64,000 bases of DNA from positions 56,017-120,016 of the forward strand of contig NW_021833009.1 in NCBI RefSeq assembly GCF_006345805.1, read 5' to 3'. A program made the translations under genes and the position numbers. Every line of letters starts with the position of its first letter. Position 1 is the first letter of the stretch. The notes below the pieces were generated by a model, which did not search any database, was not told the DNA's origin, and saw only the letters and a list, made by a program, of their open reading frames with translations. The stretch is from Octopus sinensis. Lineage: Eukaryota. Of the stretch, positions 40,877 to 42,303 are shown piece by piece.

Positions 40877-42303
40877 ATGTTAATTTCAGACCATGAGTTG
40901 ACGACTCTCCTAATTGGCATAAATTCGATTAAATTTGGAAAATTTGTGTTAAAAAGTGGGCAAGAGGCGCCGATTTATTTTGACATGAGGAAAATAATGT
41001 CCCACCCTCCCGTGCTGGTGAGACCACACCCATCATCCACAGAGACGTGTCAGTACTCACATTGCTGACTTTATACGCACAAGGTGTCCCGATTTCGACT
41101 TGATTTGCTCAGTTCCATGCGGGGCTCTGCCAATTGGATCAGTTCTCCTCTGATCTGTCCATTCATAGGCCGTGGCTTACATTCTGGGCGTACCCCTCCT
41201 GACTGTGTTCGACTCACACACTGTGCACGGGCAGTACGAGGAAGGACAGAGGTGTCTGGTCATTGAGGACGTGGTCACCACTGGGTCATCCCTCAAGGAC
41301 GTCGTTGATGTACTATTCTTTATTATATTCTAGATTTTGAAAAGCTCTGGTCTTGTTGTGAAGGACACTGTCGCCATTCTGGACAGACAACAAGGAGGAC
41401 GGGAACTACTTGAATCCTCTTCCACTTCACTCCACTCGTTTGAATTTATTTATTAATTATAATATAAAAATAATTAATTAATAGACTTTTAAATATGCAA
41501 CAAATATGGTATCAATGCCGACTGGACTCACTGGTCCCAGTCTCATCCCTCCCATCAATAAATGAATATATGATCAGCCTGGGGATCTCCCCTCAGAAGT
41601 TTATCGGAGTGCCCGAATGTGCAGAAATAGGACAAACCCACCCATTGAAAGCCCGACTGGAGGACATTTGTCGGACAAAGTCAATTCCCCGCGTGTGTTT
41701 ATATTTGGGGAACACAAAGGACATGGAGGAGGCACGAATGGTGTGATGTGTTCATTGAAAGGCAGCTGATAGGGAAGGGGGGACCGTACTGTGGAATGAT
41801 AATCCTGAGCAGTCTCCTGTTTGAGTTCACCCCCCAATTCGTGAGGGAGTTGGTTGATTTAAAGAGGGAACACAATATCCTACTGATGGATGACCGGTGT
41901 GTGGGTTGTGGCCTATTCGTAGACGATTGGCGGACATTGGGCACACCAACATGCTACAATTGCAGTCAGGACTAATGAAACTGGGGGAGTGGGCAGATCT
42001 GGTCTCCTTTGTCGCCTTCCCTGGGCCAGCAGTGGTCACCCCAAGTGTTGTGTAGTCCTCATGTTATGTTAGACTAATATCGGCTGTGTTTTGTACAGTG
42101 AAATGAGTGTGTCTCGACTGCAGTACCAGAAAGGTGTGTTTGTGAGTGTAATGACAGTTAATGACGAGATTGCATTGGCCAATACTCATTCGGTCGTCGG
42201 CTTCATGAGGAAAGTCGGGGAATATGAGATGCAACATATTTCCACTTTTTTGTTTTTGAAGACTGGTTTGCTGTGCCGAGGTAGTTTTAGGGGCGGGGGT
42301 TGA
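40877..42303 (+). CDS. UMPS: UMP synthase (OPRT-OMPDC fusion) with degenerate active sites, multi-exon; 3' end uncertain
   Basis: KFGKFVLKSG..PIYFDMR, CLVIEDVVTTGSS, LDRQQGG; OMPDC segment FTPQFVRELVDLKREHNILLMDDRRLADIGHT, GEWADLV, SEMS, VVGF. Confidence 0.88.

Follow-up and report, generated by a model that had tools for sequence, protein, structure and literature searches.

A UMP synthase homologue without catalytic residues on a probable dicyemid contig of the Octopus sinensis assembly: a candidate retained pseudoenzyme

What role is left to a UMP synthase (UMPS) gene that has kept an open reading frame through nine exons and lost the residues with which the enzyme works? The question is raised by a stretch of 64,000 nucleotides (the window) on the unplaced contig VCDQ01013043.1 of GCA_006345805.1, the assembly of Octopus sinensis (PMC10700109). 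The window contains a gene whose predicted product resembles the bifunctional UMPS, in which an orotate phosphoribosyltransferase (OPRT) domain is followed by an orotidine 5'-monophosphate decarboxylase (OMPDC) domain. The answer that we favor, with moderate confidence, is that this gene comes from one of the dicyemid mesozoans, which parasitize the renal sac of octopuses, and that its product, a UMPS homologue, would be a catalytically dead pseudoenzyme that selection has retained.

The gene model was constructed by a three-frame reading of positions 40400-42900, in which peptide segments that hop from one frame to another were joined over short GT...AG gaps; the resulting splicing pattern is thus a prediction (Table 1). 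All 8 introns are of the GT-AG type and range from 23 to 47 bp. The spliced frame has no internal stops, compared with 8 to 33 stops in the other five frames, and retention of any single intron would truncate the protein within 1 to 26 codons. The product of 432 residues is shorter than canonical UMPS, which has about 470 to 480. An initial annotation of this DNA had described the frame and the splice sites as clean, and this description agrees with the present model, in which the only stop is the terminal one. However, it placed the end of the gene at 42303. If intron 8 is retained, the frame does end there, at a TGA (42301-42303); removal of this 25-bp intron instead carries the frame into exon 9, whose tail (FKSILSHF) can be aligned to FKAYEERL in the C-terminal helix of the canonical protein. 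The phosphate-binding region discussed below is missing whether or not intron 8 is spliced.

Table 1. Coordinates of the UMPS-like gene, its motifs and two neighboring genes within the 64,000-nucleotide window (residue numbers such as K59 are those of yeast OMPDC).
Feature	Position	Strand	Remarks
UMPS-like gene, ATG to TAG	40877..42397	+	9 exons, 432 codons; hand-built model, script-checked
Exon 1 (aa 1-47)	40877..41017	+	Then intron 1, 41018-41042, 25 bp, GT..AG
Exon 2 (aa 48-80)	41043..41141	+	Then intron 2, 41142-41168, 27 bp
Exon 3 (aa 81-127)	41169..41309	+	Bears shortened loop and PRPP motif; then intron 3, 41310-41333, 24 bp
Exon 4	41334..41437	+	Then intron 4, 41438-41484, 47 bp
Exon 5	41485..41740	+	Inter-domain linker and beginning of OMPDC half; then intron 5, 41741-41765, 25 bp
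Exon 6	41766..41896	+	Then intron 6, 41897-41922, 26 bp, phase 2, within first Arg codon of DDRR
Exon 7	41923..42049	+	Then intron 7, 42050-42072, 23 bp
Exon 8	42073..42265	+	Then intron 8, 42266-42290, 25 bp
Exon 9 (aa 398-432 and stop TAG, 42395-42397)	42291..42397	+	Overlooked by the initial annotation
OPRT N-terminal hood, KFGKFVLKSGQEAPIYFDMR	40931..40990	+	Conserved; alignments
TVFDSH (residues 92-97)	41202..41219	+	Leftover of OPRT flexible catalytic loop; alignments; inside exon 3
PRPP-binding motif, LVIEDVVTTGSS	41256..41291	+	Fully conserved; Pfam, alignments
LDRQQGG	41379..41399	+	Conserved OPRT motif (orotate-pocket Arg), kept; alignments
VCLYLGN	41693..41713	+	For canonical LC(L/V)SAD; Asp (D37) to Gly; alignments
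GMIILSSLL	41793..41819	+	For canonical C.LKTHVDIL; K59 to Ile, H61 to Leu, next Asp to Ser; alignments
DDRRLADIGHT	41889..41947	+	Spans intron 6; D91 and D96 equivalents kept, K93 to Arg; alignments
YSEMSV	42094..42111	+	S154 equivalent (EMS) kept; alignments
C-terminal tail, HSLRSNEFAVINFDSTNFKSILSHFDSN	42311..42394	+	GQQY to HSLR; about 24 residues including D.IIVGRG deleted; alignments, tblastn
DHODH gene, class 2 (mitochondrial, quinone-type)	15121..16406	-	7 exons, 6 introns of 22-27 bp, 378 aa; 24 kb upstream of UMPS-like gene
Tetraspanin ORF	16455-17252	-	Single-exon; recorded on contig VCDQ01013043.1 (120,016 bp)

The window protein is clearly related to UMPS. An exhaustive HMMER search of 1.84 billion representative proteins returned 5113 homologues, none more than 42% identical, and those checked by name were all UMPS; a word-index search gave 4 matches of at most 39% identity. 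The order of the two domains, OPRT then OMPDC, is also that of UMPS. To gauge the divergence, conserved columns were defined as those at least 85% conserved among 84 full-length UMPS. The window protein misses 25 of these 57 columns (44%), whereas the median across UMPS is 2.5. Database proteins with 20 or more departures are of reversed domain order, partial or themselves degenerate, and UMPS not flagged in any of these ways miss no more than 10. The losses of the window protein are not evenly spread; they are concentrated in the OPRT loop and in the ligand contacts of OMPDC.

Outside its loop, the OPRT half is well preserved. In a search of the PDB it matches human OPRT (2WNS) with E = 5.8e-31, and PF00156 matches residues 102 to 149 with 31.2 bits (cut-off 26.3), a score in the normal range, as canonical UMPS give 29 to 44 bits. 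The N-terminal hood is conserved in the stretch KFGKFVLKSG..PIYFDMR, including a Lys that aligns to what we take to be K26 of Salmonella OPRT, and 18 of the 21 conserved OPRT columns outside the loop are kept (86%). The loop itself accounts for 6 of the 9 OPRT losses. In alignments to canonical UMPS, TVFDSH stands for RKEAKSYGTKK, with a deletion of 7 residues, and neither Lys nor Arg is present between L90 and R108. In active OPRT, this mobile loop brings its Lys and Arg over phosphoribosyl pyrophosphate (PRPP) and pyrophosphate, and mutants of the loop lysine have a kcat that is lower by orders of magnitude.

The OMPDC half has changed much more, keeping only 14 of 30 conserved columns. It still matches human OMPDC in the PDB search (E about 1e-14). 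However, PF00215 matches only residues 268 to 370, corresponding to profile positions 39-124 of 221, with 28.5 bits (cut-off 27); canonical UMPS match positions 1-221 with 181 to 217 bits, so that the score is about 15% of normal. In canonical OMPDC, the equivalent of K93 is the general acid that protonates C6, in a charged network that also includes K59, D91, and D96; the phosphodianion is gripped by Q215, Y217, and R235, which provide a large share of transition-state binding. The window protein has lost D37, K59, H61, K93 (now Arg), P202 (TPG reads KTG), Q215/Y217, G234-R235, and the whole GRG strand. Motifs retained in the alignments are D91/D96, IG.T, WAD, PG, EMS, and VGF. The Arg codon at the K93 position is CGA (41924-41926), at least two substitutions away from AAA or AAG.

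A tblastn search with three canonical UMPS against the 64-kb window revealed no stray exon for the QQY...IIVGRG region and no second UMPS copy. Alternative splicing that would restore the lysines was considered and rejected: there is no AAR codon near the exon 6/7 junction, and any retained intron truncates the protein. As a separate observation, the chains in the best-scoring OMPDC structures (9how/9hox and related entries) are variants of human UMPS with the sequence DRRFADIG, in which Arg occupies the position of the catalytic Lys, and thus structural data on this very substitution appear to exist.

These comparisons bear out the central claim of the initial annotation, that an intact gene lacks catalytic residues in both domains, and the gene model, the alignments, and the Pfam and PDB comparisons agree with its individual readings. 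It had reported that the PRPP motif VIEDVVTTGSS is kept; that the OPRT loop is replaced by TVFDSH, with no basic residue and no intron that could hide one (the position within exon 3 is consistent with this); that EDRKFADIGNT reads DDRRLADIGHT, with the catalytic Lys replaced by Arg at 41924-41926; that LKTHVD reads IILSS; and that the C-terminal QY..IIVGRG region is missing. The losses extend beyond that list, to the D37 equivalent (SAD reads YLG), H61, P202, and part of the active-site periphery.

Three defining features of UMPS thus fail: the OPRT loop, the Lys-Asp-Lys-Asp tetrad together with D37, and the phosphodianion-binding residues with the C-terminal strands. For this reason the window protein, judged by its sequence, is a UMPS homologue that should not be classed as a UMP synthase enzyme, and it falls within the sequence definition of a pseudoenzyme. 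Since both lysines, D37, the whole phosphodianion gripper, and the OPRT loop are gone, both activities have very probably been lost. An AlphaFold2 model, built from an alignment of 5 sequences, gave a predicted local distance difference test score (pLDDT) of 75 to 94 in the OPRT half and below 36 for residues 320 to 432. It was not used because a canonical UMPS control behaved in the same way, indicating that the low confidence reflects the shallow alignment rather than degeneracy.

Has such a gene been maintained, or is it a relic in decay? None of the usual lesions of a pseudogene (premature stop, frameshift, broken splice site, lost coding composition) is present. All 16 splice-site dinucleotides are intact, and every gap relative to canonical UMPS is a whole number of codons. 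The GC content at third codon positions (GC3) is 52%, equal to that of the dihydroorotate dehydrogenase (DHODH) gene in the same window, whereas the GC content is 32% in the flanking DNA and 36% in introns. Codon usage correlates with that of the DHODH and tetraspanin genes when read in frame (r = 0.76), and not when read out of frame (0.28 and -0.01). In a neutral simulation (200 runs with the AT-rich background composition), 3 stops are expected by the time 10% of the amino acids have changed, and the probability of none is 0.05; at 20%, 35%, and 44% change, 5.6, 10, and 12 stops are expected, and not one of the 200 runs was free of stops. The presumably functional DHODH of the window provides a baseline for the lineage: it departs from the consensus at 28 (23%) of 121 deeply conserved columns, against a median of 4 departures. 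The excess of about 20% over this baseline would still mean more than 5 stops under neutrality.

Together, the frame, the splice sites, the composition, and the simulation favor a maintained gene and may reflect purifying selection. That a catalytically dead UMPS homologue has been kept by selection therefore seems to us somewhat more credible than its negation. The initial annotation had proposed a pseudoenzyme kept for a non-catalytic role. Retention now finds support in the intact nine-exon frame, the eight splice pairs, the live codon composition, and the simulated stops, all of it indirect; the role itself stays at the level of a proposal, taken up below.

The identity of the organism is central to what such a gene might mean. 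The DHODH introns measure 26, 22, 23, 27, 25, and 26 bp, and 13 of the 14 introns in the DHODH and UMPS-like genes fall between 22 and 27 bp. Miniature introns of this kind are characteristic of dicyemids: those of Dicyema sp. have a median length of 27 bp, with two-thirds below 30 bp (PMC6543705). Dicyema japonicum, which was collected from the renal sac of O. sinensis, has a mean intron length of 38 bp, 6.2 introns per gene, and 36.7% GC, and a gene number of about 5,000 marks the genomes of dicyemids as extremely reduced (PMC6736024). The GC content of the window, 30 to 44% per 4 kb, and its gene structure match those of D. japonicum. The best protein matches of the UMPS-like and DHODH proteins are 36 to 49% identical, and none of them is from a cephalopod. 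In the case of DHODH, identity to the molluscan enzymes is 42 to 45%, the best matches overall reach 45 to 49%, and among 6835 homologues there is no match at the cephalopod level, even though octopus proteomes are public. The mini-introns, the GC content and gene structure, and the lack of a cephalopod-level match lead us to conclude, without a direct match to a named dicyemid sequence, that the contig is in all likelihood dicyemid DNA that was carried into the octopus assembly. With a dicyemid as its owner, a loss of de novo pyrimidine synthesis would be far less surprising.

The DHODH gene is relevant in its own right, given that the enzyme makes the orotate on which UMPS acts. By Pfam it is full-length (PF01180, 263 bits). 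Cys takes the place of the catalytic Ser (NISCPN), and the active-site loop is 3 residues shorter, compared with NVSSPNTAGLRSLQG; the remainder is well conserved. NVSCPN occurs in 6 of 120 class-2 DHODH homologues, indicating that the Cys is unusual and not unique. Read directly from the sequence, the protein also keeps what we take to be the FMN and orotate-pocket motifs. As to the pathway as a whole, the initial annotation had offered as an alternative a rewired route in which this DHODH would no longer supply UMP synthesis; the conserved enzyme may have a working OPRT and OMPDC as its partners elsewhere in the genome, or it may serve another purpose. A search of the dicyemid genome papers (including PMC6543705 and PMC6736024) found no gene-level call on pyrimidine synthesis.

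How might a UMPS homologue without catalysis be of use? In the most economical mechanism, a possible though doubtful one, the OPRT half, with its nearly fully conserved core, would bind PRPP and/or ligands of the orotate type as before but no longer convert them. The remnant of OMPDC, which comprises the N-terminal two-thirds of the barrel and the dimer-interface motif DDRRLADIG, would serve as a scaffold for folding and dimerization. Instead of catalyzing a reaction, the protein would sense or sequester its ligands or be the partner subunit of another protein. The parasite itself, presumably a pyrimidine auxotroph, would obtain its pyrimidines from host urine.

Several considerations weigh against a dead and selectively retained UMPS. 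The lineage evolves fast, as DHODH also departs at 23% of its conserved columns, and only about half of the 44% departure of the UMPS-like protein is excess, the rest being background. The simulation relies on an uncertain estimate of neutral time. Selection through nonsense-mediated decay could also preserve the open frame for the benefit of the OPRT half only, with no role for the amino acids of the OMPDC half. The splicing pattern has been read from sequence only, the AlphaFold2 model does not separate the window protein from canonical UMPS, and the ligand-binding and scaffold roles are conjectural. Finally, the conserved DHODH implies continued production of orotate, which would fit better with a working OPRT and OMPDC elsewhere in the genome, and the UMPS-like copy might then be a redundant paralogue.

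This last point leads to the alternative that survives best, one that we regard as unlikely: the window protein is a divergent paralogue, and a canonical UMPS, or a separate OPRT and OMPDC, carries out the chemistry from another locus. The copy would be a duplicated, subfunctionalized or regulatory subunit, which may heterodimerize with the active enzyme; as OPRT active sites are shared across the dimer, a subunit without a loop could borrow that of its partner. Such a paralogue overlaps with the explanation we favor and differs from it on auxotrophy only. The conservation of the adjacent DHODH along its full length, suggesting that orotate is produced and needs a consumer, is in its favor, as are the tandem UMPS-like units of Trichinella described below, whose complementary defects show that UMPS duplicates and degenerates in parasites. 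However, the 64-kb window contains no second copy, and redundant metabolic paralogues are not expected among about 5,000 dicyemid genes (PMC6736024). Nor does anything exceed 42% identity in the 1.84 billion representative proteins, a library seemingly without dicyemid data: the control search with DHODH likewise gave no match above 49% identity, and thus the libraries appear to lack dicyemid sequences and the lack of a UMPS-like orthologue in them says nothing.

We consider it improbable that the gene is a unitary pseudogene in early decay, freed of constraint by a switch to pyrimidine salvage and with a frame still open by chance. Parasites do commonly lose de novo pyrimidine synthesis (10.1101/236539), and the loss of catalytic and binding residues in both domains, with the deletion of two functional segments, is what such decay might look like. 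Yet there is not one stop or frameshift in 432 codons, the splice dinucleotides are all in place, and the gaps are all of whole codons. GC3 and codon usage equal those of live neighbors against a background of 32% GC. The conserved-column loss beyond the DHODH baseline is about 20%, and even at 10% neutral amino-acid change the probability of a stop-free frame is about 0.05 or less. The OPRT core, with 86% of its columns conserved, does not have the look of a decaying sequence either.

It is far less probable still that the protein remains an enzyme, in which a fast lineage has moved the catalytic residues, with Arg serving for Lys and other basic residues for those of the loop. Sequence-based pseudoenzyme calls are sometimes wrong (PMC10211241). 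Moreover, D91, D96, S154, the PRPP motif, and the orotate-pocket Arg are all kept, and the same lineage has remodeled the active-site loop of its DHODH while keeping the remainder. Nevertheless, the losses add up (both lysines, D37, H61, P202, Q215, Y217, R235, and an entire strand), nothing basic is left in the loop, and PF00215 scores at about 15% of the usual value. The roles of the K93 equivalent, the phosphodianion gripper, and the OPRT loop lysine in catalysis are also hard to reconcile with an active protein.

That this is a genuine octopus gene, or an artefact of the assembly or of the gene model, has equally little to recommend it: the contig is deposited as Octopus sinensis and the splicing pattern is inferred rather than observed, but two independent genes share 22-27 bp introns that match dicyemids and no cephalopod, the DHODH is only 42-45% identical to its molluscan counterparts and has no cephalopod match, single-base assembly errors are insufficient to turn Lys into a CGA codon at least two changes away or to delete several codons at a time, and the conclusion is the same with or without splicing of the last intron.

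If the explanation we favor, a dead UMPS homologue retained in a dicyemid, is correct and this is the only UMPS copy, then the parasite cannot make UMP from orotate and depends on the pyrimidines of host urine, which would be a concrete dependency, open to experiment, in an animal that ranks among the most reduced of all. The finding becomes less startling in that the owner would be an extreme endoparasite and not a free-living animal, and more general in that other parasites, too, carry crippled copies of UMPS. The occurrence of an intact yet disabled UMPS gene, with parallels in Trichinella and tapeworms, suggests a second, non-catalytic use of the UMPS fold; a full-text literature search found no paper on a UMPS pseudoenzyme or on such a use. 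There is also a practical consequence. The Octopus sinensis reference assembly would hold at least one 120-kb contig of parasite DNA, and those who use this assembly for analyses of gene families or horizontal transfer should be aware of the contamination.

The rest of the window contains a variety of other features. Directly 3' of the UMPS-like gene is an open reading frame (ORF) for a basic helix-loop-helix (bHLH) protein at 43399-43668 (+; PF00010, 44 bits), followed by an ORF at 43843-44457 (+) with a weak SMAD MH2 domain (PF03166, 32 bits); the two may belong to one gene or two. Housekeeping-type genes are found at about 4000-7000 (+), at about 9800-10150, and at 55699-56148 (-). These regions include exons of a MAPK-like kinase (PF00069), an actin-related protein (PF00022, 91 bits), a histone H2A-like ORF (PF16211/PF00125), and a fragment of an Arf-family GTPase (PF00025), and such genes fit a gene-dense, small animal genome. 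Two nearly identical ORFs of 147 aa without a Pfam match, at 48239-48682 and 51159-51602 (+), are 2,920 bp apart and lie inside an apparent tandem duplication of about 2.9 kb, in which the surrounding ORFs recur as well. A minisatellite-like array at about 24668-26487 can be read as long repetitive ORFs in both orientations; VSNIRTEMSKVITV is one example of its units. Mobile elements appear to be represented by two remnants of the Tc1/mariner type, a transposase at 32928-33281 (+; PF01498, HTH_Tnp_Tc3_2, 50.8 bits) and a sequence at 943-1446 (-) that has no Pfam match and resembles a transposase N-terminus, and by reverse-transcriptase-like ORF pieces around 53-55 kb.

Comparison with known systems places the window protein at one end of a range. 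Canonical bifunctional UMPS, as represented by the human enzyme (2WNS for OPRT; 2QCC/2QCD, among others, for OMPDC), has the same domain order; relative to it, the window protein is without the OPRT loop, the OMPDC residues listed above, and the last phosphate-binding strand. Degenerate relatives were counted only where an alignment verified them. A first group consists of the Trichinella proteins named 'uridine 5'-monophosphate synthase' (for example, KAL1243919.1 and KRX76493.1), annotated in 10 named species or genotypes; their source is a nematode and not a spiralian. Like the window protein, they contain an OMPDC that lacks K59 (LIIRSD, where the window protein has IILSS), QQY, and GRG and that keeps the D-R-K/R-x-x-D motif, and their match to Pfam OMPdecase extends no further than about position 155 of 221. 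Unlike the window protein, they consist of tandem double units whose defects complement each other. In unit A, the OPRT loop (RKDAKAYG) is intact and K93 and the PRPP motif are present, but LIIRSD stands for LKTHVD and there is no QQY or GRG. Unit B keeps K59 and VVVGRG, and has DGN for DRK and an altered OPRT loop. Neither unit has a complete OMPDC active site, and in its crippled form unit A shows 78% identity between the proteins of T. pseudospiralis and T. nativa.

A second group consists of 'hypothetical proteins' of diphyllobothriid tapeworms, Spirometra sp., Sparganum proliferum, and S. erinaceieuropaei (KAL7063704.1, BHF58171.1, and VZI30227.1), which are UMPS-like and, as in the window protein, have a degenerate OMPDC half. 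In these proteins K59 is replaced by Met, EMS is lost, TPG reads VPD, and GQQY and IIVGRG are gone; the Pfam OMPdecase match (56.5 bits) covers positions 1-158 of 221. Their OPRT loop (RKAAKDYG) and DRKLAD are intact, whereas the OPRT loop of the window protein is lost, and thus they may plausibly be OPRT-only salvage enzymes acting on orotate or uracil. Early steps of pyrimidine synthesis are reportedly missing from tapeworms and filariae (10.1101/236539), and the tapeworms accordingly receive their pyrimidines from the host.

In the Trichinella and tapeworm proteins the part of OMPDC that is missing is, as in the window protein, the C-terminal third. The window protein is only 24 to 30% identical to them, which indicates that the resemblance is convergent. 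With its OPRT loop gone as well, it is the most extreme of the degenerate cases. A broader idea, which we offer as speculation and think rather unlikely, is that dead or half-dead UMPS scaffolds have been retained convergently in dicyemids, Trichinella, and diphyllobothriids, with the phosphoribosyltransferase (PRT) half re-used for sensing PRPP or pyrimidines or as a partner subunit. In the dicyemid, the Cys-type DHODH would be uncoupled from UMP synthesis, for example by passing electrons from host dihydroorotate to the quinone pool, and the animal would live as an auxotroph on octopus urine. Possible analogues are PyrR of Bacillus and human PRTFDC1, in which a type-I PRT fold with its PRPP/nucleotide motif is kept for binding or regulation with little or no catalysis. 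The analogy is one of fold: PyrR and PRTFDC1 belong to other PRT subfamilies (UPRT-like and HPRT-like, respectively), and both are single-domain proteins, whereas the window protein carries the remnant of an OMPDC.

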